From Utricularia gibba (lineage: Eukaryota; Plantae; Magnoliophyta): 64,000 bases of DNA. A program made the position numbers and the translations under genes. The notes under the pieces were generated by a model. The model saw only the letters and a list, made by a program, of their open reading frames with translations. It did not search any database and was not told the DNA's origin. The stretch lies in NCBI GenBank assembly GCA_002189035.1, contig NEEC01000136.1, forward strand, positions 25,330 to 89,329, in the 5' to 3' direction. This document shows, piece by piece, positions 1-24,480 of the stretch. How positions within the stretch are numbered: the stretch's first letter is position 1; each line of letters begins with the position of its first letter.

Positions 1-3000
1 GTTGTCGGCGGCTGCCCACATGGTTTTTCAAGCAACAGCTTGCCGTTTTAAGGCGGGTGCTGTCGTTGACAGCTTTGTAAGGGCCCAAGGTTTGGTCTGG
101 CTCCTGAGCCCAATCGGGTCCTACTCGATGAAAATCGTGATGCATTTAATGAAGTTAGGATGTCATGAGCGCCCCAAATGGTTTTCTCAAAACCTGATTT
201 ATATTTGACGAGGTGCTCTAGGCTGGCACTAGTATCGAGCAATGGTCGAGTCGCGCTCTGGCCATAGTCATTTGTAGCCTGGTCAAAAAAGCGATGCATT
301 TATTAACGTTGGGTTTTCGGCGGCTGCCTACATGCTTTTTGAAGCAAAAGTTGTCGTTTTTTGGCGGGTGCTGTTGTTGGGAACTTCGTCCGGACCCAAG
401 GTTCGGTCTGACTTCACAGCACAATAAGGTCCCATTCGACGAAAATCGTGATACCTTTATTGAAGTTAGGATCTCATGACCGCCCAAATGCTTTTTTCAA
501 CAGCATGCTTTAAACTTGAGAAGGCGCTTTTGTGGGTCACCGAGATCGGGCCGGAATTCAGGTCGGGCTTGGGGGACAAAGTCAGCTGTAGCCCGTCAAA
601 AGAAGTGATGCATTTATTAACGTTGGCTTGTCGGCGGCTGCCCACATGGTTTTTAAAGCAACAGCTTGCCGTTTTAAGGCGGGTGCTGTCGTTGGCAGCT
701 TTGTAAGGGCCCAAGGTTCGGTCTGGCTCCTGAGCCCAATCGGGTCCTACTCGATGAAAATCGTGATGCATTTGCTTTTGTTAGGATGTCATGAGAACCC
801 AATGGGTTTTCTCCACACTCTACTTTATATTTGAGAAGGCGCTCTCGGGGGGTTTAGGGATTGGGCCAGAGGTCGGGTCGGGCTCACGCCCATAGTCAGT
901 TGTAGCCCGGAAAATAAGTCATGCATTTATCAACGTTGGGTTTTCGGCGGCTGCCTAAATGGTTTTTCAAGCAACAGCTTGCCGTTTTAAGGCGGGTGCT
1001 GTCGTTGGCAGCTTTGTACGGGCCCAAGGTTTGGTCTGGCTCCTGAGCCCAATCGGGTCCTACTCGATGAAAATCGTGATGCATTTAATGAAGTTAGGAT
1101 GTCATGAGCGCCCCAAATGGTTTTCTCAACAACCTGATTTATATTTGACGAGGTGCTCTAGGCTGGCACTAGTATCGAGCAAATGGTCGAGTCGCGCTCT
1201 GGCCCATAGTCATTTGTAGCCCGGCCAAAAAAGTGATGCATTTATTAACGTTGGGTTTTCGGCGGCTGCCTACATGCTTTTTGAAGCAAAAGTTGTCGTT
1301 TTTTGGCGGGTGCTGTTGTTGGGAACTTCGTCCGGACCCAAGGTTCGGTCTGACTTCACAGCACAATAAGGTCCCATTCGACGAAAATCGTGATACCTTT
1401 ATTGCTGTTAGGATCTCATGATTACCCCAAATGCTTTTTTCAACAGCATGCTATACACTTGAGAAGGCGCTTTTGTGGGTCACCGAGATCGGCCCGGAAT
1501 TCGGGTCGAGCTCGGGCCCAAAGTCAGCTGTAGCCCGATAAAAGAAGTGATGCATTTATTAACGTTGGGTTGTCGGCGGCTGCCCACATGGTTTTTCAAG
1601 CAACAGCTTGCCGTTTTAAGGCGGGTGCTGTCGTTGACAGCTTTGTAAGGGCCCAAGGTTTGGTCTGGCTCCTGAGCCCAATCGGGTCCTACTCGATGAA
1701 AATCGTGATGCATTTAATGAAGTTAGGATGTCATGAGCGCCCAAATGGTTTTCTCAACAACCTGATTTATATTTGACGAGGTGCTCTAGGCTGGCACTAG
1801 TATCGAGCAAATGGTCGAGTCGCGCTCTGGCCCATAGTCATTTGTAGCCTGGTCAAAAAAGCGATGCATTTATTAACGTTGGGTTTTCGGCGGCTGCCTA
1901 CATGCTTTTTGAAGCAAAAGTTGTCGTTTTTTGGCGGGTGCTGTTGTTGGAACTTCGTCCGGACCCAAGGTTCGGTCTGACTTCACAGCACAATAAGGTC
2001 CCATTCGACGAAAATCGTGATACCTTTATTGAAGTTAGGATCTCATGACCGCCCCAAATGCTTTTTTCAACAGCATGCTTTAAACTTGAGAAGGCGCTTT
2101 TGTGGGTCACCGAGATCGGCCGGAATTCAGGTCGGGCTTGGGGACAAAGTCAGCTGTAGCCCGTCAAAAGAAGTGATGCATTTATTAACGTTGGCTTGTC
2201 GGCGGCCCCACATGGTTTTAAAGCACAGCTTGCCGTTTTAGGCGGTGCTGTCGTTGGCAGCTTTGTAAGGGCCCAAGGTTCGGTCTGGCTCCTGAGCCCA
2301 ATCGGGTCCTACTCGATGAAAATCGTGATGCATTTGCTTTTGTTAGGATGTCATGAGAACCCCAATGGGTTTTCTCCACACTCTACTTTATATTTGAGAA
2401 GGCGCTCTCGGGGGTTTAGGGATTGGGCCAGAGGTCGGGTCGGGCTCACGCCCATAGTCAGTTGTAGCCCGGAAAATAAGTCATGCATTTATCAACGTTG
2501 GGTTTTCGGCGGCTGCCTAAATGGTTTTTCAAGCAACAGCTTGCCGTTTTAAGGCGGGTGCTGTCGTTGGCAGCTTTGTACGGGCCCAAGGTTTGGTCTG
2601 GCTCCTGAGCCCAATCGGGTCCTACTCGATGAAAATCGTGATGCATTTAATGAAGTTAGGATGTCATGAGCGCCCCAAATGGTTTTCTCAACAACCTGAT
2701 TTATATTTGACGAGGTGCTCTAGGCTGGCACTAGTATCGAGCAAATGGTCGAGTCGCGCTCTGGCCCATAGTCATTTGTAGCCCGGCCAAAAAAGTGATG
2801 CATTTATTAACGTTGGTTTTCGGCGGCTGCCTACATGCTTTTTGAGGCAAAAGTTGTCGTTTTTTGGCGGGTGCTGTTGTTGGGAACTTCGTCCGGACCC
2901 AAGGTTCGGTCTGACTTCACAGCACAATAAGGTCCCATTCGACGAAAATCGTGATACCTTTATTGCTGTTAGGATCTCATGATTACCCCAAATGCTTTTT

Positions 3001-6000
3001 TCAACAGCATGCTATACACTTGAGAAGGCGCTTTTTGTGGTCACCGAGATCGGCCCGGAATTCGGGTCGAGCTCGGGCCCAAAGTCAGCTGTAGCCCGAT
3101 AAAAGAAGTGATGCATTTATTAACGTTGGGTTGTCGGCGGCTGCCCACATGGTTTTTCAAGCAACAGCTTGCCGTTTTAAGGCGGGTGCTGTCGTTGACA
3201 GCTTTGTAAGGGCCCAAGGTTTGGTCTGGCTCCTGAGCCCAATCGGGTCCTACTCGATGAAAATCGTGATGCATTTAATGAAGTTAGGATGTCATGAGCG
3301 CCCCAAATGGTTTTCTCAACAACCTGATTTATATTTGACGAGGTGCTCTAGGCTGGCACTAGTATCGAGCAAATGGTCGAGTCGCGCTCTGGCCCATAGT
3401 CATTTGTAGCCTGGTCAAAAAAGCGATGCATTTAACGTTGGGTTTTCGGCGGCTGCCTACATGCTTTTTGAAGCAAAAGTTGTCGTTTTTTGGCGGTGCT
3501 GTTGTTGGAAACTTCGTCCGGACCCAAGGTTCGGTCTGACTTCACAGCACAATAAGGTCCCATTCGACGAAAATCGTGATACTTTAGGATCTCATGACCG
3601 CCCAAATGCTTTTTTCAACAGCATGCTTTAAACTTGAGAAGGCGCTTTTGTGGGTCACCGAGATCGGGCCGGAATTCAGGTCGGGCTTGGGGGACAAAGT
3701 CAGCTGTAGCCCGTCAAAAGAAGTGATGCATTTATTAACGTTGGCTGTCGGCGGCTGCCCACATGGTTTTTAAAGCAACAGCTTGCCGTTTTAAGGCGGG
3801 TGCTGTCGTTGGCAGCTTTGTAAGGGCCCAAGGTTCGGTCTGGCTCCTGAGCCCAATCGGGTCCTACTCGATGAAAATCGTGATGCATTTGCTTTTGTTA
3901 GGATGTCATGAGAACCCCAATGGGTTTTCTCCACACACTCTACTTTATATTTGAGAAGGCGCTCTCGGGGGTTTAGGGATTGGGCCAGAGGTCGGGTCGG
4001 GCTCACGCCCATAGTCAGTTGTAGCCCGAAAATAAGTCATGCATTTATCAACGTTGGGTTTTCGGCGGCTGCCTAAATGGTTTTTCAAGCAACAGCTTGC
4101 CGTTTTAAGCGGGTGCTGTGTTGGCAGCTTTGTACGGGCCCAAGGTTTGGTCTGGCTCCTGAGCCCAATCGGGTCCTACTCGATGAAAATCGTGATGCAT
4201 TTAATGAAGTTAGGATGTCATGAGCGCCCCAAATGGTTTTCTCAACAACCTGATTTATATTGACGAGGTGCTCTAGGCTGGCACTAGTATCGAGCAATGG
4301 TCGAGTCGCGCTCTGGCCATAGTCATTAGCCGGCCAAAAAAGTGATGCATTTATTAACGTTGGGTTTTCGGCGGCTGCCTACATGCTTTTTGAGGCAAAA
4401 GTTGTCGTTTTTTGGCGGGTGCTGTTGTTGGGAACTTCGTCCGGACCCAAGGTTCGGTCTGACTTCACACAAATAAGGTCCCATTCGACGAAAATCGTGA
4501 TACCTTTATTGCTGTTAGGATCTCATGATTACCCAAATGCTTTTTTCAACAGCATGCTATACACTTGAGAAGGCGCTTTTGTGGGTCACCGAGATCGGCC
4601 CGGAATTCGGGTCGAGCTCGGGCCCAAAGTCAGCTGTAGCCCGATAAAAGAAGTGATGCATTTATTAACGTTGGGTTGTCGGCGGCTGCCCACATGGTTT
4701 TTCAAGCAACAGCTTGCCGTTTTAAGGCGGGTGCTGTCGTTGACAGCTTTGTAAGGGCCCAAGGTTTGGTCTGGCTCCTGAGCCCAATCGGGTCCTACTC
4801 GATGAAAATCGTGATGCATTTAATGAAGTTAGGATGTCATGAGCGCCCCAAATGGTTTTCTCAACAACCTGATTTATATTTGACGAGGTGCTCTAGGCTG
4901 GCACTAGTATCGAGCAAATGGTCGAGTCGCGCTCTGGCCCATAGTCATTTGTAGCCTGGTCAAAAAAGCGATGCATTTATTAACGTTGGGTTTTCGGCGG
5001 CTGCCTACATGCTTTTTGAAGCAAAAGTTGTCGTTTTTTGGCGGGTGCTGTTGTTGGGAACTTCGTCCGGACCCAAGGTTCGGTCTGACTTCACAGCACA
5101 ATAAGGTCCCATTCGACGAAAATCGTGATACCTTTATTGAAGTTAGGATCTCATGACCGCCCAAATGCTTTTTTCAACAGCATGCTTTAAACTTGAGAAG
5201 GCGCTTTTGTGGGTCACCGAGATCGGGCCGGAATTCAGGTCGGGCTTGGGGACAAAGTCAGCTGTAGCCCGTCAAAAGAAGTGATGCATTTATTAACGTT
5301 GGCTTGTCGGCGGCTGCCCACATGGTTTTTAAAGCAACAGCTTGCCGTTTTAAGGCGGGTGCTGTCGTTGGCAGCTTTGTAAGGGCCCAAGGTTCGGTCT
5401 GGCTCCTGAGCCCAATCGGGTCCTACTCGATGAAAATCGTGATGCATTTGCTTTTGTTAGGATGTCATGAGAACCCCAATGGGTTTTTCTCACACTCTAC
5501 TTATATTTGAGAAGGCGCTCTCGGGGGGTTTAGGGATTGGGCCACGGGTCGGGCTCACGCCCATCAGTTGTAGCCCGGAAATAAGTCATGCATTTATCAA
5601 CGTTGGGTTTCGGCGGCTGCCTAAATGGTTTTTCAAGCAACAGCTTGCCGTTTTAAGGCGGGTGCTGTCGTTGGCAGCTTTGTACGGGCCCAAGGTTTGG
5701 TCTGGCTCCTGAGCCCAATCGGGTCCTACTCGATGAAAATCGTGATGCATTTAATGAAGTTAGGATGTCATGAGCGCCCCAAATGGTTTTCTCAACAACC
5801 TGATTTATATTTGACGAGGTGCTCTAGGCTGGCACTAGTATCGAGCAAATGGTCGAGTCGCGCTCTGGCCCATAGTCATTTGTAGCCCGGCCAAAAAAGT
5901 GATGCATTTATTAACGTTGGGTTTTCGGCGGCTGCCTACATGCTTTTTGAGGCAAAAGTTGTCGTTTTTTGGCGGGTGCTGTTGTTGGGAACTTCGTCCG

Positions 6001-9000
6001 GACCCAAGGTTCGGTCTGACTTCACAGCACAATAAGGTCCCATTCGACGAAAATCGTGATACCTTTATTGCTGTTAGGATCTCATGATTACCCCAAATGC
6101 TTTTTTCAACAGCATGCTATACACTTGAGAAGGCGCTTTTGTGGGTCACCGAGATCGGCCCGGAATTCGGGTCGAGCTCGGGCCCAAAGTCAGCTGTAGC
6201 CCGATAAAAGAAGTGATGCATTTATTAACGTTGGGTTGTCGGCGGCTGCCCACATGGTTTTTCAAGCAACAGCTTGCCGTTTTAAGGCGGGTGCTGTCGT
6301 TGACAGCTTTGTAAGGGCCCAAGGTTTGGTCTGGCTCCTGAGCCCAATCGGGTCCTACTCGATGAAAATCGTGATGCATTTAATGAAGTTAGGATGTCAT
6401 GAGCGCCCCAAATGGTTTTCTCAACAACCTGATTTATATTTGACGAGGTGCTCTAGGCTGGCACTAGTATCGAGCAAATGGTCGAGTCGCGCTCTGGCCC
6501 ATAGTCATTTGTAGCCTGGTCAAAAAAGCGATGCATTTATTAACGTTGGGTTTTCGGCGGCTGCCTACATGCTTTTTGAAGCAAAAGTTGTCGTTTTTTG
6601 GCGGGTGCTGTTGTTGGGAACTTCGTCCGGACCCAAGGTTCGGTCTGACTTCACAGCACAATAAGTCCCATTCGACGAAATCGTGATACCTTTATTGAAG
6701 TTAGATCTCATGACCGCCCAAATGCTTTTTTCAACAGCATGCTTTAAACTTGAGAAGGCGCTTTTGTGGGTCACCGAGATCGGCCGGAATTCAGGTCGGG
6801 CTTGGGACAAAGTCAGCTGTAGCCCGTCAAAAGAAGTGATGCATTTATTAACGTTGGCTTGTCGGCGGCTGCCCACATGGTTTTTAAAAGCAACAGCTTG
6901 CCGTTTTAAGGCGGGTGCTGTCGTTGGCAGCTTTGTAAGGGCCCAAGGTTCGGTCTGGCTCCTGAGCCAATCGGGTCCTACTCGATGAAAATCGTGATGC
7001 ATTTGCTTTTGTTAGGATGTCATGAGAACCCAATGGTTTTCTCCACACTCTACTTTATTTAGAAGGCGCTCTCGGGGGGAGGGCCAGAGGTCGGGTCGGG
7101 CTCACGCCCATAGTCATTGTAGCCCGGAAAATAAGTCATGCATTTATCAACGTTGGGTTTTCGGCGGCTGCCTAAATGGTTTTTCAAGCAACAGCTTGCC
7201 GTTTTAAGGCGGGTGCTGTCGTTGGCAGCTTTGTACGGGCCCAAGGTTTGGTCTGGCTCCTGAGCCAATCGGGTCCTACTCGATGAAAATCGTGATGCAT
7301 TTAATGAAGTTAGGATGTCATGAGCGCCCCAAATGGTTTTCTCAACAACCTGATTTATATTTGACGAGGTGCTCTAGGCTGGCACTAGTATCGAGCAAAT
7401 GGTCGAGTCGCGCTCTGGCCCATAGTCATTTGTAGCCCGGCCAAAAAAGTGATGCATTTATTAACGTTGGGTTTTCGGCGGCTGCCTACATGCTTTTTGA
7501 GGCAAAAGTTGTCGTTTTTTGGCGGGCTGTTGTTGGGAACTTCGTCCGGACCCAAGGTTCGGTCTGACTTCACAGCACAATAAGGTCCCATTCGACGAAA
7601 ATCGTGATACCTTTATTGCTTAGGATCTCATGATTACCCAAATGCTTTTTCAACAGCATGCTATACACTTGAGAAGGCGCTTTTGTGGGTCACCGAGATC
7701 GGCCCGGGAATTCGGGTCGAGGCCCAAAGTCAGCTGTAGCCCGATAAAAGAAGTGATGCATTTATTAACGTTGGGTTGTCGGCGGCTGCCCACATGGTTT
7801 TTCAAGCAACAGCTTGCCGTTTTAAGGCGGGTGCTGTCGTTGACAGCTTTGTAAGGGCCCAAGGTTTGGTCTGGCTCCTGAGCCCAATCGGGTCCTACTC
7901 GATGAAAATCGTGATGCATTTAATGAAGTTAGGATGTCATGAGCGCCCCAAATGGTTTTCTCAACAACCTGATTTATATTTGACGAGGTGCTCTAGGCTG
8001 GCACTAGTATCGAGCAAATGGTCGAGTCGCGCTCTGGCCCATAGTCATTTGTAGCCTGGTCAAAAAAGCGATGCATTTATTAACGTTGGGTTTTCGGCGG
8101 CTGCCTACATGCTTTTTGAAGCAAAAGTTGTCGTTTTTTGGCGGGCTGTTGTTGGGAACTTCGTCCGGACCCAAGGTTCGGTCTGACTTCACAGCACAAT
8201 AAGGTCCCATTCGACGAAAATCGTGATACCTTTATTGAAGTTAGGATCTCATGACCGCCCCAAATGCTTTTTTCAACAGCATGCTTTAAACTTGAGAAGG
8301 CGCTTTTGTGGGTCACCGAGATCGGGCCGGAATTCAGGTCGGGCTTGGGGACAAAGTCAGCTGTAGCCCGTCAAAAGAAGTGATGCATTTATTAACGTTG
8401 GCTTGTCGGCGGCTGCCCACATGGTTTTTAAAGCAACAGCTTGCCGTTTTAAGGCGGGTGCTGTCGTTGGCAGCTTTGTAAGGGCCCAAGGTTCGGTCTG
8501 GCTCCTGAGCCCAATCGGGTCCTACTCGATGAAAATCGTGATGCATTTGCTTTTGTTAGGATGTCATGAGAACCCCAATGGGTTTTCTCCACACTCTACT
8601 TTATATTTGAGAAGGCGCTCTCGGGGGGTTTAGGGATTGGGCCAGAGGTCGGGTCGGGCTCACGCCCATAGTCAGTTGTAGCCCGGAAAATAAGTCATGC
8701 ATTTATCAACGTTGGGTTTTCGGCGGCTGCCTAAATGGTTTTTCAAGCAACAGCTTGCCGTTTTAAGGCGGGTGCTGTCGTTGGCAGCTTTGTACGGGCC
8801 CAAGGTTTGGTCTGGCTCCTGAGCCCAATCGGGTCCTACTCGATGAAAATCGTGATGCATTTAATGAAGTTAGGATGTCATGAGCGCCCCAAATGGTTTT
8901 CTCAACAACCTGATTTATATTTGACGAGGTGCTCTAGGCTGGCACTAGTATCGAGCAAATGGTCGAGTCGCGCTCTGGCCATAGTCATTTGTAGCCCGGC

Positions 9001-11082
9001 CAAAAAAGTGATGCATTTATTAACGTTGGGTTTTCGGCGGCTGCCTACATGCTTTTTGAAGCAAAAGTTGTCGTTTTTTGGCGGGTGCTGTTGTTGGGAA
9101 CTTCGTCCGGACCCAAGGTTCGGTCTGACTTCACAGCACAATAAGGTCCCATTCGACGAAAATCGTGATACCTTTATTGCTGTTAGGATCTCATGATTAC
9201 CCCAAATGCTTTTTTCAACAGCATGCTATACACTTGAGAAGGCGCTTTTGTGGGTCACCGAGATCGGCCCGGAATTCGGGTCGAGCTCGGGCCCAAAGTC
9301 AGCTGTAGCCCGATAAAAGAAGTGATGCATTTATTAACGTTGGGTTGTCGGCGGCTGCCCACATGGTTTTTCAAGCAACAGCTTGCCGTTTTAAGGCGGG
9401 TGCTGTCGTTGACAGCTTTGTAAGGGCCCAAGGTTTGGTCTGGCTCCTGAGCCCAATCGGGTCCTACTCGATGAAAATCGTGATGCATTTAATGAAGTTA
9501 GGATGTCATGAGCGCCCCAAATGGTTTTCTCAACAACCTGATTTATATTTGACGAGGTGCTCTAGGCTGGCACTAGTATCGAGCAAATGGTCGAGTCGCG
9601 CTCTGGCCCATAGTCATTTGTAGCCTGGTCAAAAAAGCGATGCATTTATTAACGTTGGGTTTTCGGCGGCTGCCTACATGCTTTTTGAAGCAAAAGTTGT
9701 CGTTTTTTGGCGGGTGCTGTTGTTGGGAACTTCGTCCGGACCCAAGGTTCGGTCTGACTTCACAGCACAATAAGGTCCCATTCGACGAAAATCGTGATAC
9801 CTTTATTGAAGTTAGGATCTCATGACCGCCCCAAATGCTTTTTTCAACAGCATGCTTTAAACTTGAGAAGGCGCTTTTGTGGGTCACCGAGATCGGGCCG
9901 GAATTCAGGTCGGGCTTGGGGGACAAAGTCAGCTGTAGCCCGTCAAAAGAAGTGATGCATTTATTAACGTTGGCTTGTCGGCGGCTGCCCACATGGTTTT
10001 TAAAGCAACAGCTTGCCGTTTTAAGGCGGGTGCTGTCGTTGGCAGCTTTGTAAGGCCCAAGGTTCGGTCTGGCTCCTGAGCCCAATCGGGTCCTACTCGA
10101 TGAAAATCGTGATGCATTTGCTTTTGTTAGGATGTCATGAGAACCCCAATGGGTTTTCTCCACACTCTACTTTATATTTGAGAAGGCGCTCTCGGGGGGT
10201 TTAGGGATTGGGCCAGAGGTCGGGTCGGGCTCACGCCCATAGTCAGTTGTAGCCCGGAAAATAAGTCATGCATTTATCAACGTTGGGTTTTCGGCGGCTG
10301 CCTAAATGGTTTTTCAAGCAACAGCTTGCCGTTTTAAGGCGGGTGCTGTCGTTGGCAGCTTTGTACGGGCCCAAGGTTTGGTCTGGCTCCTGAGCCCAAT
10401 CGGGTCCTACTCGATGAAAATCGTGATGCATTTAATGAAGTTAGGATGTCATGAGCGCCCCAAATGGTTTTCTCAACAACCTGATTTATATTTGACGAGG
10501 TGCTCTAGGCTGGCACTAGTATCGAGCAAATGGTCGAGTCGCGCTCTGGCCCATAGTCATTTGTAGCCCGGCCAAAAAAGTGATGCATTTATTAACGTTG
10601 GGTTTTCGGCGGCTGCCTACATGCTTTTTGAGGCAAAAGTTGTCGTTTTTTGGCGGGTGCTGTTGTTGGGATTCGTCCGGACCCAAGGTTCGGTCTGACT
10701 TCACAGCACAATAAGGTCCCATTCGACGAAAATCGTGATACCTTTATTGCTGTTAGGATCTCATGATTACCCCAAATGCTTTTTTCAACAGCATGCTATA
10801 CACTTGAGAAGGCGCTTTTGTGGGTCACCGAGATCGGCCCGGAATTCGGGTCGAGCTCGGGCCCAAAGTCAGCTGTAGCCCGATAAAAGAAGTGATGCAT
10901 TTATTAACGTTGGGTTGTCGGCGGCTGCCCACATGGTTTTTCAAGCAACAGCTTGCCGTTTTAAGGCGGGTGCTGTCGTTGACAGCTTTGTAAGGGCCCA
11001 AGGTTTGGTCTGGCTCCTGAGCCCAATCGGGTCCTACTCGATGAAAATCGTGATGCATTTAATGAAGTTAGGATGTCATGAG
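1..11082 (+). repeat. Domain 1: 10-monomer (5-dimer) higher-order repeat, ~1,570 bp, ~7 copies; order A1B1-A2B2b-A1'B3-A3B1-A2B2a
   Basis: The marker GTTGACAGC (ORF ...VVDSF...) recurs in ORFs starting at 2, 1570, 3131, 4676, 6236, 7776, 9345 and 10915, a spacing of 1,540-1,570 bp. The same five dimer types recur in the same order. Confidence 0.96.
9322..10891 (+). repeat. Representative intact 10-mer HOR unit (1,570 bp)
   Basis: Dimer starts at 9322 (A1B1), 9637 (A2B2b), 9952 (A1'B3), 10265 (A3B1) and 10580 (A2B2a), with the next unit at 10892. Dimer lengths are 315, 315, 313, 315 and 312 bp. Confidence 0.93.
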
Positions 11083-11495
11083 AACCCCAATGGGTTTTCT
11101 CACACTCTACTTTATATTTGAGAAGGCGCTCTCGGGGGTTTGGGAGTGGGCCAGAGGTCGGGTCGGGCTCACGCCCATAGTCAGTTGTAGCCCGGAAAAT
11201 AAGTGATGCATTTATCAACGTTGGGTTTTCGGCGGCTGCCAAATGGTTTTTCAAGCAACAGCTTGCCGTTTTAAGGCGGGTGCTGTCGTTGGCATTTGTA
11301 AGGGCCCAAGGTTCGGTCTGGCTCCTGAGCCCAATCGGGTCCTACTCGATGAAAATCGTGATGCATTTGCTTTTGTTAGGATCATGAGAACCCCAATGGT
11401 TTTTCCACACTCTACTTTATATTGAGAAGGCGCTCTCGATTGGGCCAGAGGTCGGTCGGGCTCACGCCCATAGTCAGTTGTAGCCCGGAAAATAA
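11067..11495 (+). repeat. Domain 1/2 junction: chimeric B1/B3 monomer followed by a non-canonical A3+B3 dimer
   Basis: A B1 head (ATGCATTTAATGAAGTTAGG) continues into a B3 tail (GAGAACCCCAATGGG) at ~11082. An A3 head at 11203 then leads to B3 rather than B1. Confidence 0.8.
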
Positions 11496-14400
11496 GTGAT
11501 GCATTTATCAACGTTGGGTTTTCGGCGGCTGCCTAAATGGTTTTTCAAGAACAGCTTGCCGTTTTAAGGCGGGTGGTGTCGTTGGCAGCTTTGTAAGGGC
11601 CCAAGGTTTGGTCTGGCTCCTGAGCCCAATCGGGTCCTACTCGATGAAAATCGTGATGCATTTAATGAAGTTAGGATGTCATGAGCGCCCCAAATGGTTT
11701 TCTCAACAACCTGATTTATATTTGACGAGGTGCTCTAGGCTGGCACTAGTATCGAGCAAATGGTCGAGTCGCGCTCTGGCCCATAGTCATTGTAGCCCGG
11801 CCAAAAAAGTGATGCATTTATTAACGTTGGGTTTTCGGCGGCTGCCTACATGCTTTTTCAAGGAAAAGTTGTCGTTTTTTGGCGGGTGCTGTTGTTGGGA
11901 ACTTCGTCCGGACCCAAGGTTCGGTCTGACTTCACAGCACAATAAGGTCCCATTCGACGAAAATCGTGATACCTTTATTGAAGTTAGGATCTCGTGACCA
12001 CCCCAAATGCTTTTTTCAACAGCATGCTATACACTGAGAGGGCGCTTTTGTGGGTCACCGAGATCGGGCCGGAATTCGGGTCGAGCTCGGGCCCAAAGTC
12101 AGCTGTAGCCCGACAAAAGAAGTGATGCATTTATTAACGTTGGGTTGTCGGCGGCTGCCCACATGGTTTTTCAAGCAACAGCTTGCCGTTTTAAGGCGGG
12201 TGCTGTCGTTGGCAGCTTTGTAAGGGCCCAAGGTTCGGTCAGGCTCCTGAGCCAATCGGGTCCTACTCGATGAAAATCGTGATGCATTTGCTTTTGTTAG
12301 GATGTCATGAGAACCCCAATGGGTTTTCTCCACACTCTACTTTATATTTGAGAAGGCGCTCTCGGGGGGTTTTGGGATTGGGCCTGAGGTCGGGTCGGGC
12401 TCACGCCCATAGTCAGTTGTAGCCCGGAAAATAAGTGATGCATTTATCAACGTTGGGTTTTCGGCGGCTGCCTAAATGGTTTTTCAAGCAACAGCTTGCC
12501 GTTTTAAGGCGGGTGCTGTCGTTGGCAGCTTTGTAAGGGCCCAAGGTTTGGTCTGGCTCCTGAGCCCAATCGGGTCCTACTCGATGAAAATCGTGATGCA
12601 TTTAATGAGTTAGGATGTCATGAGCGCCCCAAATGGTTTTCTCAACAACCTGATTTATATTTGACGAGGTGCTCTAGGCTGGCACTAGTATCGAGCAAAT
12701 GGTCGAGTCGCGCTCTGGCCCATAGTCATTTGTAGCCCGGCCAAAAAAGTGATGCATTTATTAACGTTGGGTTTTCGGCGGCTGCCTACATGCTTTTTCA
12801 AGGAAAAGTTGTCGTTTTTTGGCGGGTGCTGTTGTTGGGAACTTCGTCCGGACCCAAGGTTCGGTCTGACTTCACAGCACAATAAGGTCCCATTCGACGA
12901 AAATCGTGATACCTTTATTGAAGTTAGGATCTCATGACCACCCCAAATGCTTTTTTCAACAGCATGCTTTAACTTGAGAAGGCGCTTTTGTGGGTCACCA
13001 GATCGGGCCGGAATTCGGGTCGGGCTTGGGACAAAGTCAGCTGTAGCCCGTCAAAAGAAGTGATGCATTTATTAACGTTGGGTTGTCGGCGGCTGCCCAC
13101 ATGGTTTTTCAAGCAACAGCTTGCCGTTTTAAGGCGGGTGCTGTCGTTGGCAGCTTTGTAAGGCCCAAGGTTCGGTCAGGCTCCTGAGCCCAATCGGGTC
13201 CTACTCGATGAAAATCGTGATGCATTTGCTTTGTTAGGATGTCATGAGAACCCCAATGGGTTTTCTCCACACTCTACTTTATATTTGAGAAGGCGCTCTC
13301 GGGGTTTTGGGATTGGGCCAGAGGTCGGGTCGGGCTCACGCCCATAGTCAGTTGTAGCCCGGAAAATAAGTGATGCATTTATCAACGTTGGGTTTTCGGC
13401 GGCTGCCTAAATGGTTTTTCAAGCAACAGCTTGCCGTTTTAAGGCGGGTGCTGTCGTTGGCAGCTTTGTAAGGGCCCAAGGTTTGGTCTGGCTCCTGAGC
13501 CCAATCGGGTCCTACTCGATGAAAATCGTGATGCATTTAATGAAGTTAGGATGTCATGAGCGCCCCAAATGGTTTTCTCAACAACCTGATTTATATTTGA
13601 CGAGGTGCTCTAGGCTGGCACTAGTATCGAGCAAATGGTCGAGTCGCGCTCTGGCCCATAGTCATTTGTAGCCCGGCCAAAAAAGTGATGCATTTATTAA
13701 CGTTGGGTTTTCGGCGGCTGCCTACATGCTTTTTCAAGGAAAAGTTGTCGTTTTTTGGCGGGTGCTGTTGTTGGGAACTTCGTCCGGACCCAAGGTTCGG
13801 TCTGACTTCACAGCACAATAAGGTCCCATTCGACGAAAATCGTGATACCTTTATTGAAGTTAGGATCTCATGACCACCCAAATGCTTTTTCAACAGCATG
13901 CTTTAAACTTGAGAAGGCGCTTTTGTGGGTCACCCAGATCGGGCCGGAATTCGGGTCGGCTCTGGGGACAAAGTCAGCTGTAGCCGTCAAAAGAAGTGAT
14001 GCATTTATTAACGTTGGGTTGTCGGCGGCTGCCCACATGGTTTTTCAAGCAACAGCTTGCCGTTTTAAGGCGGGTGCTGTCGTTGGCAGCTTTGTAAGGG
14101 CCCAAGGTTCGGTCAGGCTCCTGAGCCAATCGGGTCCTACTCGATGAAAATCGTGATGCATTTGCTTTTGTTAGGATGTCATGAGACCCCAATGGGTTTT
14201 CTCCACACTCTACTTTATATTTGAGAAGGCGCTCTCGGGGGTTTTGGATTGGGCCAGAGGTCGGGTCGGGCTCACGCCCATAGTCAGTTGTAGCCCGGAA
14301 AATAAGTGATGCATTTATCAACGTTGGGTTTTCGGCGGCTGCCTAAATGGTTTTTCAAGCAACAGCTTGCCGTTTTAAGGCGGGTGCTGTCGTTGGCAGC

Positions 14401-17400
14401 TTTGTAAGGGCCCAAGGTTTGGTCTGGCTCCTGAGCCCAATCGGGTCCTACTCGATGAAAATCGTGATGCATTTAATGAAGTTAGGATGTCATGAGCGCC
14501 CCAAATGGTTTTCTCAACAACCTGATTTATATTTGACGAGGTGCTCTAGGCTGGCACTAGTATCGAGCAAATGGTCGAGTCGCGCTCTGGCCCATAGTCA
14601 TTTGTAGCCCGGCCAAAAAAGTGATGCATTTATTAACGTTGGGTTTTCGGCGGCTGCCTACATGCTTTTTCAAGGAAAAGTTGTCGTTTTTTGGCGGGTG
14701 CTGTTGTTGGGAACTTCGTCCGGACCCAAGGTTCGGTCTGACTTCACAGCACAATAAGGTCCCATTCGACGAAAATCGTGATACCTTTATTGAAGTTAGG
14801 ATCTCATGACCACCCCAAATGCTTTTTTCAACAGCATGCTATACACTGAGAAGGCGCTTTTGTGGGTCACCGAGATCGGGCCGGAATTCGGGTCGGCTCG
14901 GGCCCAAAGTCAGCTGTAGCCCGACAAAAGAAGTGATGCATTTATTAACGTTGGGTTGTCGGCGCTGCCCACATGGTTTTTCAAGCAACAGCTTGCCGTT
15001 TTAAGGCGGGTGCTGTCGTTGGCAGCTTTGTAAGGCCCAAGGTTCGGTCAGGCTCCTGAGCCCAATCGGGTCCTACTCGATGAAAATCGTGATGCATTTG
15101 CTTTTGTTAGGATGTCATGAGAACCCCAATGGGTTTTCTCAACACTCTACTTTATATTTGAGAAGGCGCTCTCGGGCCTCGGGTCGGGCTTTAGTCAGTG
15201 TAGCCCGGAAAATAAGTGATGCATTTATCAACGTTGGGTTTTCGGCGGCTGCCGTTTTTCAAGCAACATTAAGGCGGGTGCTGTCGTTGGCCCCAATGAG
15301 CCCAATCGGGTCCTACTCGATGAAAATCGTGATGCATAGGATGTCATGAGAACCCAATGGGTTGAGAAGGCGCTCTCGATTGTCGGGCTCATGCCCATAG
15401 TCAGTTGTACCGGAAAATAAGTGATGCATTTATCAACGTTGGGTTTTCGGCGGCTGCCTAAATGGTTTTTCAAGCAACAGCTTGCCGTTTTAAGGCGGGT
15501 GCTGTCGTTGGCAGCTTTGTAAGGGCCCAAGGTTTGGTCTGGCTCCTGAGCCCAATCGGGTCCTACTCGATGAAAATCGTGATGCATTTAATGAGTTAGG
15601 ATGTCATGCGCCCAAATGGTTTTCTCAACAACCTGATTTATATTTGACGAGGTGCTCTAGGCTGGCACTAGTATCGAGCAAATGGTCGAGTCGCGCTCTG
15701 GCCCATAGTCATTTGTAGCCCGGCCAAAAAAGTGATGCATTTATTAACGTTGGGTTTTCGGCGGCTGCCTACATGCTTTTTCAAGGAAAAGTTGTCGTTT
15801 TTTGGCGGGTGCTGTTGTTGGGAACTTCGTCCGGACCCAAGGTTCGGTCTGACTTCACAGCACAATAAGGTCCCATTCGACGAAAATCGTGATACCTTTA
15901 TTGAAGTTAGGATCTCATGACCACCCAAATGCTTTTTTCAACAGCATGCTATACACTGAGAAGGCGCTTTTGTGGGTCACCGAGATCGGGCCGGAATTCG
16001 GGTCGAGCTCGGGCCCAAAGTCAGCTGTAGCCCGACAAAAGAAGTGATGCATTTATTAACGTTGGGTTGCGGCGGCTGCCCACATGGTTTTTCAAGCAAC
16101 AGCTTGCCGTTTTAAGGCGGGTGCTGTCGTTGGCAGCTTTGTAAGGCCCAAGGTTCGGTCAGGCTCCTGAGCCTAATCGGGTCCTACTCGATGAAAATCG
16201 TGATGCATTTGCTTTTGTTAGGATGTCATGAGAACCCCAATGGGTTTTCTCCACACTCTACTTTATATTTGAGAAGGCGCTCTCGGGGGGTTTGGGATTG
16301 GGCCTGAGGTCGGGTCGGGCTCACGCCCATAGTCAGTTGTAGCCCGGAAAATAAGTGATGCATTTATCAACGTTGGGTTTTCGCGGCTGCCTAAATGGTT
16401 TTTCAAGCAACAGCTTGCCGTTTTAAGGCGGGTGCTGTCGTTGGCAGCTTTGTAAGGGCCCAAGGTTTGGTCTGGCTCCTGAGCCCAATCGGGTCCTACT
16501 CGATGAAAATCGTGATGCATTTAATGATGTTAGGATGTCATGAGCGCCCCAAATGGTTTTCTCAACAACCTGATTTATATTTGACGAGGTGCTCTAGGCT
16601 GGCACTAGTATCGAGCAAATGGTCGAGTCGCGCTCTGGCCCATAGTCATTTGTAGCCCGGCCAAAAAAGTGATGCATTTATTAACGTTGGGTTTTCGGCG
16701 GCTGCCTACATGCTTTTTCAAGGAAAAGTTGTCGTTTTTTGGCGGGTGCTGTTGTTGGGAACTTCGTCCGGACCCAAGGTTCGGTCTGACTTCACAGCAC
16801 AATAAGGTCCCATTCGACGAAAATCGTGATACCTTTATTGAAGTTAGGATCTCATGACCACCCCAAATGCTTTTTTCAACAGCATGCTTTAAACTTGAGA
16901 AGGCGCTTTTGTGGGTCACCCAGATCGGGCCGGAATTCGGGTCGGGCTCGGGGACAAAGTCAGCTGTAGCCCGTCAAAAGAAGTGATGCATTTATTAACG
17001 TTGGGTTGTCGGCGGCTGCCCACATGGTTTTTCAAGCAACAGCTTGCCGTTTTAAGGCGGGTGCTGTCGTTGGCAGCTTTGTAAGGGCCCAAGGTTCGGT
17101 CAGGCTCCTGAGCCTAATCGGGTCCTACTCGATGAAAATCGTGATGCATTTGCTTTTGTTAGGATGTCATGAGAACCCCAATGGGTTTTCTCCACACTCT
17201 ACTTTATATTTGAGAAGGCGCTCTCGGGGGTTTGGGATTGGGCCAGAGGTCGGGTCGGGCTCACGCCCATAGTCAGTTGTAGCCCGGAAAATAAGTGATG
17301 CATTTATCAACGTTGGGTTTTCGGCGGCTGCCTAAATGGTTTTTCAAGCAACAGCTTGCCGTTTTAAGGCGGGTGCTGTCGTTGGCAGCTTTGTAAGGGC

Positions 17401-20400
17401 CCAAGGTTTGGTCTGGCTCCTGAGCCCAATCGGGTCCTACTCGATGAAAATCGTGATGCATTTAATGAAGTTAGGATGTCATGAGCGCCCCAAATGGTTT
17501 TCTCAACAACCTGATTTATATTTGACGAGGTGCTCTAGGCTGGCACTAGTATCGAGCAAATGGTCGAGTCGCGCTCTGGCCCATAGTCATTTGTAGCCCG
17601 GCCAAAAAAGTGATGCATTTATTAACGTTGGGTTTTCGGCGGCTGCCTACATGCTTTTTCAAGGAAAAGTTGTCGTTTTTTGGCGGGGCTGTTGTTGGGA
17701 ACTTCGTCCGGACCCAAGGTTCGTCTGACTTCACAGCACAATAAGGTCCCATTCGACGAAAATCGTGATACCTTTATTGAAGTTAGGATCTCATGACCAC
17801 CCCAAATGCTTTTTTCAACAGCATGCTATACACTTGAGAAGGCGCTTTTGTGGGTCACCGAGATCGGGCCGGAATTCGGGTCGGGCTCTGGGGACAAAGT
17901 CAGCTGTAGCCCGTCAAAAGAAGTGATGCATTTATTAACGTTGGGTTGTCGGCGCTGCCCACATGGTTTTTCAAGCAACAGCTTGCCGTTTTAAGGCGGG
18001 TGCTGTCGTTGGGCTTTGTAAGGCCCAAGGTTCGGTCAGGCTCCTGAGCCCAATCGGGTCCTACTCGATGAAAATCGTGATGCATTTGCTTTTGTTAGGA
18101 TGTCATGAGAACCCCAATGGGTTTTCTCCACACTCTACTTTATATTTGAGAAGGCGCTCTCGGGGGGTTGGGATTGGGCCAGAGGTCGGGTCGGGCTCAT
18201 GCCCATAGTCAGTTGTAGCCCGGAAAATAAGTGATGCATTTATCAACGTTGGGTTTTCGGCGGCTGCCTAAATGGTTTTTCAAGCAACAGCTTGCCGTTT
18301 TAAGGCGGGTGCTGTCGTTGGCAGCTTTGTAAGGGCCCAAGGTTTGGTCTGGCTCCTGAGCCCAATCGGGTCCTACTCGATGAAAATCGTGATGCATTTA
18401 ATGAAGTTAGGATGTCATGAGCGCCCCAAATGGTTTTCTCAACAACCTGATTTATATTTGACGAGGTGCTCTAGGCTGGCACTAGTATCGAGCAAATGGT
18501 CGAGTCGCGCTCTGGCCCATAGTCATTTGTAGCCCGGCCAAAAAAGTGATGCATTTATTAACGTTGGGTTTTCGGCGGCTGCCTACATGCTTTTTCAAGG
18601 AAAAGTTGTCGTTTTTTGGCGGGTGCTGTTGTTGGGAACTTCGTCCGGACCCAAGGTTCGGTCTGACTTCACAGCACAATAAGGTCCCATTCGACGAAAA
18701 TCGTGATACCTTTATTGAAGTTAGGATCTCATGACCACCCCAAATGCTTTTTTCAACAGCATGCTATACACTTGAGAGGCGCTTTTGTGGGTCACCGAGA
18801 TCGGGCCGGAATTCGGGTCGAGCTCGGGCCCAAAGTCAGCTGTAGCCCGACAAAAGAAGTGATGCATTTATTAACGTTGGGTTGTCGGCGGCTGCCCACA
18901 TGGTTTTTCAAGCAACAGCTTGCCGTTTTAAGGCGGGTGCTGTCGTTGGCAGCTTTGTAAGGGCCCAAGGTTCGGTCAGGCTCCTGAGCCAATCGGGTCC
19001 TACTCGATGAAAATCGTGATGCATTTGCTTTTGTTAGGATGTCATGAGAACCCCAATGGGTTTTCTCCACACTCTACTTTATATTTGAGAAGGCGCTCTC
19101 GGGGGGTTTTGGGATTGGGCCAGGTCGGGTCGGGCTCACGCCCATAGTCAGTTGTAGCCCGGAAAATAAGTGATGCATTTATCAACGTTGGGTTTTCGGC
19201 GGCTGCCTAAATGGTTTTTCAAGCAACAGCTTGCCGTTTTAAGGCGGGTGCTGTCGTTGGCAGCTTTGTAAGGGCCCAAGGTTTGGTCTGGCTCCTGAGC
19301 CCAATCGGGTCCTACTCGATGAAAATCGTGATGCATTTAATGAAGTTAGGATGTCATGAGCGCCCCAAATGGTTTTCTCAACAACCTGATTTATATTTGA
19401 CGAGGTGCTCTAGGCTGGCACTAGTATCGAGCAAATGGTCGAGTCGCGCTCTGGCCCATAGTCATTTGTAGCCCGGCCAAAAAAGTGATGCATTTATTAA
19501 CGTTGGGTTTTCGGCGGCTGCCTACATGCTTTTTCAAGGAAAAGTTGTCGTTTTTTGGCGGGTGCTGTTGTTGGGAACTTCGTCCGGACCCAAGGTTCGG
19601 TCTGACTTCACAGCACAATAAGGTCCCATTCGACGAAAATCGTGATACCTTTATTGAAGTTAGGATCTCATGACCACCCCAAATGCTTTTTTCAACAGCA
19701 TGCTTTAAACTTGAGAAGGCGCTTTTGTGGGTCACCGAGATCGGGCCGGAATTCGGGTCGGGCGGGGACAAAGTCAGCTGTAGCCCGACAAAAGAAGTGA
19801 TGCATTTATTAACGTTGGGTTGTCGGCGGCTGCCCACATGGTTTTTCAAGCAACAGCTTGCCGTTTTAAGGCGGGTGCTGTCGTTGGCAGCTTTGTAACC
19901 CAAGGTTCGGTCAGGCTCCTGAGCCCAATCGGGTCCTACTCAAATCGTGATGCATTTGCTTTTGTTAGGATGTCATGAGAACCCCAATGGGTTTTCTCCA
20001 CACTCTACTTTATTTGAGAAGGCGCTCTCGGGGTTTGGGATTGGGCCAGAGGTCGGGTCGGGCTCATGCCCATAGTCAGTTGTAGCCCGGAAAATAAGTG
20101 ATGCATTTATCAACGTTGGGTTTTCGGCGGCTGCCTAAATGGTTTTTCAAGCAACAGCTTGCCGTTTTAAGGCGGGTGCTGTCGTTGGCAGCTTTGTAAG
20201 GGCCCAAGTTTGGTCTGGCTCCTGAGCCCAATCGGGTCCTACTCGATGAAAATCGTGATGCATTTAATGAAGTTAGGATGTCATGAGCGCCCCAAATGGT
20301 TTTCTCAACAACCTGATTTATATTTGACGAGGTGCTCTAGGCTGGCACTAGTATCGAGCAAATGGTCGAGTCGCGCTCTGGCCCATAGTCATTGTAGCCC

Positions 20401-23400
20401 GGCCAAAAAAGTGATGCATTTATTAACGTTGGGTTTTCGGCGGCTGCCTACATGCTTTTTCAAGGAAAAGTTGTCGTTTTTTGGCGGGTGCTGTTGTTGG
20501 GAACTTCGTCCGGACCCAAGGTTCGGTCTGACTTCACAGCACAATAAGGTCCCATTCGACGAAAATCGTGATACCTTTATTGAAGTTAGGATCTCATGAC
20601 CACCCCAAATGCTTTTTTCAACAGCATGCTTTAAACTTGAGAAGGCGCTTTTGTGGGTCACCCAGATCGGGCCGGAATTCGGGTCGGGCTTGGGGACAAA
20701 GTCAGCTGTAGCCCGTCAAAAGAAGTGATGCATTTATTAACGTTGGGTTGTCGGCGGCTGCCCACATGGTTTTTCAAGCAACAGCTTGCCGTTTTAAGGC
20801 GGGTGCTGTCGTTGGCAGCTTTGTAAGGGCCCAAGGTTCGGTCAGGCTCCTGAGCCCAATCGGTCCTACTCGATGAAAATCGTGATGCATTTGCTTTTGT
20901 TAGGATGTCATGAGAACCCCAATGGGTTTTCTCCACACTCTACTTTATATTTGAGAAGGCGCTCTCGGGGGTTGGGATTGGGCCAGAGGTCGGGTCGGGC
21001 TCATGCCCATAGTCAGTTGTAGCCCGGAAAATAAGTGATGCATTTATCAACGTTGGGTTTTCGGCGGCTGCCTAAATGGTTTTTCAAGCAACAGCTTGCC
21101 GTTTTAAGGCGGGTGCTGTCGTTGGCAGCTTTGTAAGGGCCCAAGGTTTGGTCTGGCTCCTGAGCCCAATCGGGTCCTACTCGATGAAAATCGTGATGCA
21201 TTTAATGAGTTAGGATGTCATGAGCGCCCCAAATGGTTTTCTCAACAACCTGATTTATATTTGACGAGGTGCTCTAGGCTGGCACTAGTATCGAGCAAAT
21301 GGTCGAGTCGCGCTCTGGCCCATAGTCATTTGTAGCCCGGCCAAAAAAGTGATGCATTTATTAACGTTGGGTTTTCGGCGGCTGCCTACATGCTTTTTCA
21401 AGGAAAAGTTGTCGTTTTTTGGCGGGTGCTGTTGTTGGGAACTTCGTCCGGACCCAAGGTTCGGTCTGACTTCACAGCACAATAAGGTCCCATTCGACGA
21501 AAATCGTGATACCTTTATTGAAGTTAGGATCTCATGACCACCCCAAATGCTTTTTTCAACAGCATGCTATACACTTGAAGGGCGCTTTTGTGGGTCACCG
21601 AGATCGGGCCGGAATTCGGGTCGAGCTCGGGCCCAAAGTCAGCTGTAGCCCGTCAAAAGAAGTGATGCATTTATTAACGTTGGGTTGTCGGCGGCTGCCC
21701 ACATGGTTTTTCAAGCAACAGCTTGCCGTTTTAAGGCGGGTGCTGTCGTTGGCAGCTTTGTAAGGGCCCAAGGTTCGGTCAGGCTCCTGAGCCAATCGGG
21801 TCCTACTCGATGAAAATCGTGATGCATTTGCTTTTGTTAGGATGTCATGAGAACCCCAATGGGTTTTCTCCACACTCTACTTTATATTTGAGAAGGCGCT
21901 CTCGGGGGTTTTGGATTGGGCCTCGGGTCGGGCTCACGCCCATAGTCAGTTGTAGCCCGGAAAATAAGTGATGCATTTATCAACGTTGGGTTTTCGGCGG
22001 CTGCCTAAATGGTTTTTCAAGCAACAGCTTGCCGTTTTAAGGCGGGTGCTGTCGTTGGCAGCTTTGTAAGGGCCCAAGGTTTGGTCTGGCTCCTGAGCCC
22101 AATCGGGTCCTACTCGATGAAAATCGTGATGCATTTAATGAAGTTAGGATGTCATGAGCGCCCCAAATGGTTTTCTCAACAACCTGATTTATATTTGACG
22201 AGGTGCTCTAGGCTGGCACTAGTATCGAGCAAATGGTCGAGTCGCGCTCTGGCCCATAGTCATTTGTAGCCCGGCCAAAAAAGTGATGCATTTATTAACG
22301 TTGGGTTTTCGGCGGCTGCCTACATGCTTTTTCAAGGAAAAGTTGTCGTTTTTTGGCGGGTGCTGTTGTTGGGAACTTCGTCCGGACCCAAGGTTCGGTC
22401 TGACTTCACAGCACAATAAGGTCCCATTCGACGAAAATCGTGATACCTTTATTGAAGTTAGGATCTCATGACCACCCCAAATGCTTTTTTCAACAGCATG
22501 CTTTAAACTTGAGAAGGCGCTTTTGTGGGTCACCGAGATCGGGCCGGAATTCGGGTCGGGCTGGGACAAAGTCAGCTGTAGCCCGTCAAAAGAAGTGATG
22601 CATTTATTAACGTTGGGTTGTCGGCGGCTGCCCACATGGTTTTTCAAGCAACAGCTTGCCGTTTTAAGGCGGGTGCTGTCGTGGCAGCTTTGTAAGGCCC
22701 AAGGTTCGGTCAGGCTCCTGAGCCAATCGGGTCCTACTCGATGAAAATCGTGATGCATTTGCTTTTGTTAGGATGTCATGAGAACCCCAATGGGTTTTCT
22801 CCACACTCTACTTTATATTTGAGAAGGCGCTCTCGGGGGGTTTTTGGATTGGGCCAGAGGTCGGGTCGGGCTCACGCCCATAGTCAGTTGTAGCCCGGAA
22901 AATAAGTGATGCATTTATCAACGTTGGGTTTCGGCGGCTGCCTAAATGGTTTTTCAAGCAACAGCTTGCCGTTTTAAGGCGGGTGCTGTCGTTGGCAGCT
23001 TTGTAAGGGCCCAAGGTTTGGTCTGGCTCCTGAGCCCAATCGGGTCCTACTCGATGAAAATCGTGATGCATTTAATGAAGTTAGGATGTCATGAGCGCCC
23101 CAAATGGTTTTCTCAACAACCTGATTTATATTTGACGAGGTGCTCTAGGCTGGCACTAGTATCGAGCAAATGGTCGAGTCGCGCTCTGGCCCATAGTCAT
23201 TTGTAGCCCGGCCAAAAAAGTGATGCATTTATTAACGTTGGGTTTTCGGCGGCTGCCTACATGCTTTTTCAAGGAAAAGTTGTCGTTTTTTGGCGGGTGC
23301 TGTTGTTGGGAACTTCGTCCGGACCCAAGGTTCGGTCTGACTTCACAGCACAATAAGGTCCCATTCGACGAAAATCGTGATACCTTTATTGAAGTTAGGA

Positions 23401-23749: not shown

Positions 23750-24480
23750 GATTTTTATTCGACGAGGTGCTTTAAGCTGGCTCTAGTATCGAGCAAATGG
23801 TCGAGTCGCGCTCTGGCCCACAGTCATTTTGGCCCGGCCAAAAAAGTGATGCATTTATTAACGTTGGGTTTTCGGCGGCTGCCTACATGCTTTTTCAAGG
23901 AAAAGTTGTCGTTTTTTGGCGGGTGCTGTTGTTGGGAACTTCGTCCGGACCCAAGGTTCGGTCTGACTTCACAGCACAATAAGGTCCCATTCGACGAAAA
24001 TCGTGATACCTTTATTGAAGTTAGGATCTCATGACCACCCCAAATGCTTTTTTCAATAGCATGCTATACACTTGAGAAAGCGCTTTTCTGGGTCACCGAG
24101 ATCGGGCCAGAGGTCGGGTCGGGCTCTTGCCCATAGTCAGTTGTAGCCCGGAAAATAAGTCATGCATTTATCAATGTTGGGTTTCCGGCGGCTGCCTAAA
24201 TGGTTTTTCAAGCAATAGCTTGCCGTTCTAAGCGGGTGCTGTCGTTGGCAGCTTTGTAAGGGCCCAAGGTTTGGTCTGGCTCCTGAGCCCAATCGGTCCT
24301 ACTCGATGAAAATCGTGATGCATTTAATGAAGTTAGGATGTCATGAGCGCCCCAAATGGTTTTCTCAACAACCTGATTTATATTTGACGAGTGCTCTAGG
24401 CTGGCACTAGTATCGAACAAATGGTCGAGTCGCGCTCTGGCCCATAGTCATTTGTAGCCCGGCCAAAAAAGTTATGCATT
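23750..24480 (+). repeat. Divergent boundary monomers between the 6-mer and 4-mer domains, including a chimeric B2/B3 monomer
   Basis: There is a cluster of substitutions not seen in the consensus units, such as TTTTATTCGAC, CTTTAAG, CAATAGC, GAGAAAGCG, TCAATGTTGGGTTTCC and TATCGAAC. The B2 head switches to a B3 tail at GGGCC (24104-24108). Confidence 0.85.

Follow-up and report, generated by a model that had tools for sequence, protein, structure and literature searches.

In the unequal-crossover model of satellite evolution, reportedly formulated by Smith in 1976, out-of-register exchange between similar monomers yields deletion and duplication products, and exchange in a longer register amplifies the new units. 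In human alpha-satellite arrays, complete and partial HORs occur either in blocks or in alternation (HORmon, PMC9248890), and the toy cases ABCABC...ABAB and ABCABABCAB are said to resemble cen13 and cen18 (PMC9248890). Cascading HORs have been described for human chromosome 15 and others (Gluncic et al. 2024, PMC11050224). Here we analyze a window of 64,000 nt from Utricularia gibba (the whole stretch of DNA under study), in which a full unit, a shortened unit and their strict alternation are found within a single satellite array.

Results

Decomposition of the window with nhmmer yielded 413 monomers of ~157 bp each, which form A/B pairs (314-bp dimers) and fill the entire window. Clustering of the monomers gave types a, b, c, e, d/f and g: there are five coarse clusters (a, b, c+e, B2 and g), six when e is set apart and seven when B2 is split into d and f, and the types differ by 6% to more than 30%. 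The ungapped lag-identity profile was blurred by many 1-bp indels, and alignment-based comparisons were used instead. In the phase of the initial annotation, the array consists of two modules: Q, a 6-mer of ~940 bp (a-B2-e-g-c-b), and P, a 4-mer of ~627 bp (a-B2-c*-b). These are ordered as (QP)n up to 11063, then as Q units up to ~23236, and then as P units to the end, a module string that matches the succession of (PQ)n, Qn and Pn previously proposed for this array. EcoRI sites (GAATTC) are spaced alternately by ~935 and ~625 bp up to 10842, by ~937 bp up to 23484, and by ~626 bp from 26996; the sites reported at 554, 1497 and 2123, with intervals of 943 and 626 bp, are indeed present. The three domains exist as laid out below, with all coordinates given on the forward (+) strand.

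The window begins within a P module, of which only the tail (c* and b at 1–307, assigned from monomer types) lies inside the window edge; the 10-mer domain continues leftward. Domain 1 (308–11063), delimited by EcoRI spacing, monomer types and module order, is a 10-mer HOR of ~1.57 kb with Q units starting at 308, 1878, 3437, 4985, 6545, 8085 and 9654, P units starting at 1250, 2812, 4359, 5916, 7466 and 9025, and a final partial P (a-d-c*) at 10597–11063. Its joint with domain 2, located by direct reading and by private sites, lies at 11064–11079: a c* bearing a base private to domain 1 precedes g where b is expected, and the switch falls within 16 bases common to the starts of b and g, in line with the domain end earlier placed at 11082. 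Domain 2 (11826–23236), recognized from module order and subtypes, is a 6-mer HOR of ~938 bp with 11 intact Q units, interrupted at 14638–15748; the B2 subtypes of its Q units follow the order d f f ... d f f d f f d f. Domain 3 (23237–64000), recognized from module order, is a 4-mer HOR of ~626 bp with 54 intact P units, mostly 0–2 substitutions apart, and is broken up by several patchy segments and by one Q (34351–35255, identified from module types and private sites). This lone Q has 3 of the 10 private states of domain 1 Q.

The seven Q and six complete P modules of domain 1 alternate strictly, for which simple arithmetic gives a chance of 1 in 1716, and the order a-B2-e-g-c-b-a-B2-c*-b recurs 6.5 times. 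Each 10-mer contains two monomers each of types a, B2, c and b, and the homologous monomers of its two halves show 23 fixed differences that recur in every copy. The copies themselves are 96–99.6% identical counting gaps, with ~1 substitution per 1560 bp. When tested as an HOR, the 10-mer shows distinct monomer types in a fixed cyclic order and units far more alike than the monomers inside one unit; its repeated types and HOR-like sub-fragments, which are the units of domains 2 and 3, make it a compound or cascading HOR as defined in PMC11050224. The 10-mer was amplified as a single 1.57-kb unit. It had been described as a strict alternation of the 4-mer and the 6-mer, and on this point monomer types, module order and EcoRI spacing agree. 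The claimed identity of its modules with those of the pure domains holds for monomer types and order but not for the sequences, which in domain 1 carry ~11 (P) and ~10 (Q) fixed private substitutions, ~21 in total, relative to domains 2 and 3.

The initial annotation left open the direction in which these units evolved. A hybrid monomer now partly settles this: it points from Q to P, a result that is new relative to the earlier description. The e-g-c segment of Q, from which the exchange that creates P takes out 314 bp, is exemplified at 622–1092 (e, 622–779; g, 780–934; c after g, 935–1092), and the corresponding c* monomer of the 4-mer at 1564–1721, where the e state (GCC) is seen at the 5′ sites and the c state at the 3′ sites. 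With a 5′ block of three sites and a 3′ block of six, e, c-after-g and c* represent three of the four combinations. The e 5′ part joined to the c 3′ part fits c* in 58–59 of 60 copies, and the c* consensus has no mismatch to an e/c hybrid and three mismatches to pure c. Because c* is an e/c hybrid, P is Q minus 314 bp, lost through unequal crossover. In the clustering comparison, monomer g differs by more than 20% from both b and B2; as a B type of its own, it cannot come from duplication within P. As read from the sequence, these site states show the 4-mer to derive from the 6-mer by exchange between e and c, and the 6-mer Q (a-B2-e-g-c-b) is the oldest unit that can be recovered. The 10-mer therefore cannot be ancestral and must be younger than P.

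The derivation of P by unequal exchange is supported by two further monomers. At 24020–24175, alignment reveals a B2/g hybrid that has no EcoRI site and is followed by an after-g type c; it shows 7 mismatches as a d/g hybrid versus 17 for the best pure type. Both this monomer and c*, when tested, are hybrid monomers in the HORmon sense. The alignment identifies the monomer at 24020–24175 as a second, independent 314-bp deletion of Q, in another register. At 11220–11374, in a single case, the site states are c-type in the 5′ part and e-type in the 3′ part, with g on both sides, as one would expect if e and c had exchanged and this monomer were the reciprocal (duplication) product.

In a tree of modules, the Q cores of domain 1 group as a clade with an SH-aLRT of 93, placed inside the f-type Q of domain 2 (SH-aLRT 86–93), and the P cores of domain 1 form a clade (99) arising from a d-type comb that holds the P of domain 3. 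The pairing that had been predicted for a monomer tree, of domain 1 modules with their counterparts in domain 2 (f-type Q) and domain 3 (d-type P), is thus borne out, and a tree without such pairing is not seen. The B2 subtypes d and f, earlier named B2a and B2b and used as module markers, mark modules in domain 1 only: both occur intermingled in domain 2, and d makes up ~80% in domain 3. At two adjacent sites of monomer a, the grouping is by domain and not by module: both halves of domain 1 share a state that sets them apart from domains 2 and 3, and the lone Q at 34351 carries the domain 1 state at one of the two. All three domains are very uniform, and the data are compatible with more than one order of amplification of the arrays.

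Among the Q copies of domain 1 we counted 70 deleted versus 9 inserted bases, and 15 substitutions. Alignment and direct reading revealed a patchy, repeatedly deleted e-g-like segment at 15233–15437, and similar segments lie at 25424–25656, 26281–26439, 30184–30297, 37594–37683, 40270–40360, 45817–46063, 61712–62007 and 62473–62675; these are probably consensus artefacts. The breaks in domains 2 and 3 were also considered as simple deletions of Q, and this was rejected, since the alignments are fragmented and the loss is patchy. The bias of 1-bp indels towards deletion, together with the patchy e-g segments, suggests that the long-read assembly is noisy and partly collapsed, so copy numbers and long-range order are not secure.

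A comparison of the first 3.2 kb with Rfam, made with an RNA-gene-derived repeat in mind, gave a single chance-level match (E = 0.91). Reading frames are irregular and are not repeated from copy to copy, as they would be in a coding repeat, and the array is non-coding. In a full-text literature search, none of four 18–22-base monomer words was found printed in papers, and no description of this satellite family was found in the literature on 157/314-bp satellites and on Utricularia satellite DNA. The 157-bp monomer and the size of the array are compatible with a centromeric satellite but are not diagnostic.

Discussion

We propose, with a probability of about 75%, that Q is ancestral, that P arose from it by deletion, and that a QP pair diverged and was then amplified. 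The hybrid monomer shows that e and c, two A-type monomers of similar sequence, underwent an unequal homologous exchange that removed 314 bp and left c*, giving the 4-mer P (a-B2-c*-b). The 10-mer would be one Q adjoining one P, a pair present wherever P borders Q. This pair would have gained ~21 substitutions of its own and then multiplied as a 1.57-kb unit by unequal exchange in the longer register, and P alone and Q alone would have multiplied in adjoining stretches.

How many times P was formed is a separate question. The P modules of domain 1 and domain 3 could come from separate exchanges between e and c, that of domain 1 having occurred inside a Q_f Q_d pair of its own lineage; we consider this unlikely, though worth weighing seriously. 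The two-site state common to the a monomers of both domain 1 halves, and absent from domains 2 and 3, needs either gene conversion or just such a separate origin of domain 1 P; Q_f Q_d neighbours do occur in domain 2, and deletions of this kind recur, as the B2/g hybrid illustrates. However, a single short conversion tract would account for both sites just as well, the occurrence of the domain 1 state at one of them in the lone Q at 34351 makes it an older polymorphism, and, with the same hybrid structure in both sets of P, one event is simpler. The interval in which e and c crossed over is wide (alignment columns 32–138), so single and repeated origins of P are indistinguishable by the position of the crossover, and the window has no finer breakpoint markers.

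The opposite history, in which the 10-mer is older and the pure 6-mer and 4-mer domains arose through unequal exchange that dropped one module, is quite improbable. Topology alone is compatible with it; the P set of domain 3, being the most uniform, could have expanded last; and exchange between c* and e could yield a Q that carries d-type B2. Three observations point the other way: P itself is a deletion of Q, so that a Q-only state came first; domains 2 and 3 lack the ~21 private substitutions of domain 1 (three of the ten Q states are shared by the lone Q at 34351); and in the tree the Q of domain 1 falls inside the f-type units of domain 2, not the reverse (SH-aLRT 86–93). There is very little chance that the alternating and pure domains were produced by misassembly or collapse of noisy long reads: although the deletion-biased indels are concentrated in the copies at 1878–7151, the patchy e-g segments resemble a consensus of reads with and without the 314-bp piece, and domains 1 and 2, at ~11–12 kb each, come near the mean read length of 10 kb reported for the assembly, a period of 1.57 kb is a small fraction of a read, the joints have unique sequence, and both halves of domain 1 carry fixed variants found in neither domain 2 nor domain 3, so that domain 1 is not interleaved reads of the other two.

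The window offers a clean, readable plant example of longer repeat units being built from shorter ones. Thanks to the hybrid monomer, the direction can be fixed as 6-mer to 4-mer, something that seldom succeeds. At somewhat less than even odds, all stages of HOR turnover are present in this one short stretch (the 6-mer as ancestor, a pair of deletion forms that arose independently and have different hybrids, a reciprocal duplication-type monomer, and a diverged, re-expanded compound 10-mer), which, if the assembly is faithful, would make it an unusually complete natural record of unequal exchange; the array may also be a satellite overlooked in a genome whose centromeres are reportedly without satellite arrays. 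The array is poorly polished, and we caution that copy numbers should not be taken from the assembly.

It is instructive to compare this locus with the known systems. Relative to the unequal-crossover model of Smith (1976) there is no difference in principle: the window is an example of it, and appears to hold both a deletion product (c*) and a product of the reciprocal type (11220–11374). As in the cascading HORs of PMC11050224, the same monomer type is repeated within a unit, and the unit breaks into sub-fragments; here ten monomers fall into five coarse clusters (six types), with sub-fragments of six and four monomers. Unlike in those HORs, each shared type is present in two copies with fixed differences between them, and a hybrid monomer reveals how the shorter sub-fragment originated. 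There is also a parallel with the human cases analyzed by HORmon (PMC9248890), where the full and the shortened unit likewise occur in separate runs and in strict alternation, and where hybrid monomers, with a prefix from one monomer and a suffix from another, are found in the shortened forms. Since a full unit, a shortened unit and their alternation are already known from human centromeres, the general picture is unchanged. In contrast to human alpha-satellite, the present array is a plant satellite of unrelated sequence, with a 157-bp monomer in A/B dimers, and all three states are found within one 64-kb stretch.

Array structure and module layout

The window is a single tandem array across all 64 kb, with uniform composition (49% G+C) and a period of 313-314 bp in Tandem Repeats Finder. 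Searching the window with a profile derived from its initial monomers gave 413 head-to-tail monomers of ~157 bp; the 314-bp period thus corresponds to a dimer, made of one monomer from each of two distantly related classes, A and B. The array is not of human origin. Its first 3.2 kb matched no RNA family in an Rfam search, and the reading frames of the array are irregular, without recurrence between copies. Average-linkage clustering of the 405 full monomers gave two super-classes and five coarse types, and seven types at 6% distance: class A comprises a, c and e (a variant of c), and class B comprises b, g and B2, the last of which contains the EcoRI site and has sub-variants d and f.

In the phase used by the initial annotation, the 6-mer module (Q, ~940 bp) is a-B2-e-g-c-b and the 4-mer module (P, ~627 bp) is a-B2-c-b. 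That annotation described the 10-mer higher-order repeat (HOR) as an alternation of the two modules, followed by a run of Q and then a run of P, and both the EcoRI spacing and the module string confirm this layout. The GAATTC sites it had placed at 554, 1497 and 2123 are present and give 943 + 626 bp; the spacing alternates at ~935/625 bp to position 10842, is ~937 bp to 23484, and is ~626 bp from 26996 onward. The module string begins with 7 Q and 6 complete P in strict alternation (domain 1), passes through an irregular joint to 11 intact Q with one break (domain 2), and ends with 54 intact P, interrupted by a lone Q and at several short breaks (domain 3). The annotated end of domain 1 is also good: domain 1-type sequence stops at 11063, and the switch to domain 2 lies within 16 bases common to b and g. 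The ten-monomer unit is a genuine amplification unit. Its copies are 96-99.6% identical including gaps, with ~1 substitution per 1560 bp, and 23 fixed sites distinguish homologous monomers of its two halves.

Within domain 2 (11826-23236), successive Q units carry B2 subtypes in the series d f f (d, break) d f f d f f d f. This series hints at an 18-monomer (~2.8 kb) super-unit; by our own count its chance probability is roughly 1%, and no other variants have the same period.

Relationship of the modules across domains

The modules correspond across domains in monomer types and order, as initially proposed, but their sequences are not the same: domain 1 carries private fixed substitutions, ~11 in P (shared monomers) and 10 in Q. 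The domain 2 and domain 3 consensus sequences differ only at three sites where c begins and in how often d and f occur; these two variants are set apart by a block of 6-7 linked sites inside B2. The proposed use of these B2 subtypes as module markers holds in domain 1, where P has d and Q has f, but not in domain 2, which is mixed, or in domain 3, which is ~80% d.

A maximum-likelihood tree was built from the four monomers that all 79 modules share. Q cores from domain 1 make up one clade (SH-aLRT 93), nested among domain 2 Q units of the f type, and P cores from domain 1 make up another (SH-aLRT 99), on a long branch that arises from an unresolved comb of domain 3 P units and d-type Q units. 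With this placement, domain 1 monomers do pair with the domain 2 and domain 3 subtypes. One signal conflicts with the module tree: two sites in monomer a, four bases apart, have one state in both domain 1 copies of a and another in domains 2 and 3 (GAAGC, e.g. 337-345, versus CAAGG, e.g. 11855-11863), tracking domain and not module. A short gene conversion tract, an old polymorphism or a separate origin could explain this state.

The lone Q inside the 4-mer domain (34351-35255) agrees with domain 1 Q at 3 of the 10 sites where the latter has private states, and is a relative of the lineage that yielded the 10-mer.

Derivation of the 4-mer from the 6-mer

Monomers of the family comprising c and e are distinguished by three sites in a 5′ block and six in a 3′ block. 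Monomer e has GCC in the 5′ block and the e state in the 3′ block, c after g has TTA and the c state, and the c-type monomer of the 4-mer (c*) has GCC and the c state; this rule is obeyed in 20/21 e, 20/20 c after g and 58/60 c* copies. The c* consensus has 0 mismatches to an e/c hybrid versus three to pure c, and the hybrid is the best fit for 59/60 c* copies. An exchange between e and c in the order e-g-c would remove exactly one dimer (314 bp) and leave such a hybrid. The reverse path, from P to Q, cannot produce g, a distinct B type >20% from b and B2. The 4-mer thus arose from the 6-mer by deletion.

Exchanges of this kind recur in the array. A single 4-mer at 23863-24487 includes a B2/g hybrid that lacks the EcoRI site, and the next monomer is c of the after-g type; a single monomer at 11220-11374, with g on either side, joins a 5′ part of c to a 3′ part of e, the form predicted for the reciprocal duplication product.

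Sequence quality

In the interval 1878-7770, 1-bp deletions between otherwise identical copies strongly outnumber insertions and substitutions. Relative to their own consensus, the domain 1 Q copies (n = 7) have 70 deleted against 9 inserted bases, plus 15 substitutions, clustered in the copies that begin at 1878, 3437, 4985 and 6545; runs of at least 2 account for 69% of the deleted bases (expected, 53%). The deletion excess indicates that the long-read consensus was poorly polished; according to a review, the U. gibba assembly was made from noisy 10-kb reads with HGAP.

Where domains 2 and 3 are broken, e-g segments full of small deletions lie between perfect flanking monomers (15233-15437, 25424-25656, 26281-26439, 30184-30297, 37594-37683, 40270-40360, 45817-46063, 61712-62007 and 62473-62675). 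Such a pattern would be expected if reads carrying the 314-bp piece and reads lacking it had been merged into one consensus, and the segments are probably artefacts of Q reads piled with P reads, so that domain 3 of the real array may hold more Q units than were assembled. The local HOR pattern is safe, since its period is far below the read length and the private variants occur only in domain 1. It is not safe to rely on copy numbers, on domain lengths or on how pure domain 3 is.

Origin of the 10-mer

Because the 10-mer includes P, P must have originated before it. The earliest copy of P necessarily had Q neighbours, so a QP pair is as old as P. The present 10-mer array would have grown from one such pair already bearing ~21 substitutions of its own. 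We favour the building of the 10-mer from smaller modules over an ancestral 10-mer that was resolved into them. The feature is genuine and its initial interpretation is supported, while the choice between fusion and fission, which the initial annotation did not settle, is partly resolved: the hybrid c* fixes the direction from 6-mer to 4-mer, but the order of the three array expansions is not fixed, since all three arrays are very uniform.

Comparison with known systems

Compound HOR architecture is already known from human centromeres. HORmon describes hybrid monomers and partial HORs there, and contrasts full and partial units arranged in blocks with those that alternate, citing cen13 and cen18. 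In the cascading HORs of human chromosome 15, the same monomer type occurs more than once per unit, and the unit splits into sub-fragments. Our literature search found no published description of the present 157/314-bp satellite family. The putative centromeres of U. gibba have been stated to be without satellite arrays (PMC8333044), a published lack with which an array of at least 64 kb in this species conflicts, and the reported absence merits a second look.
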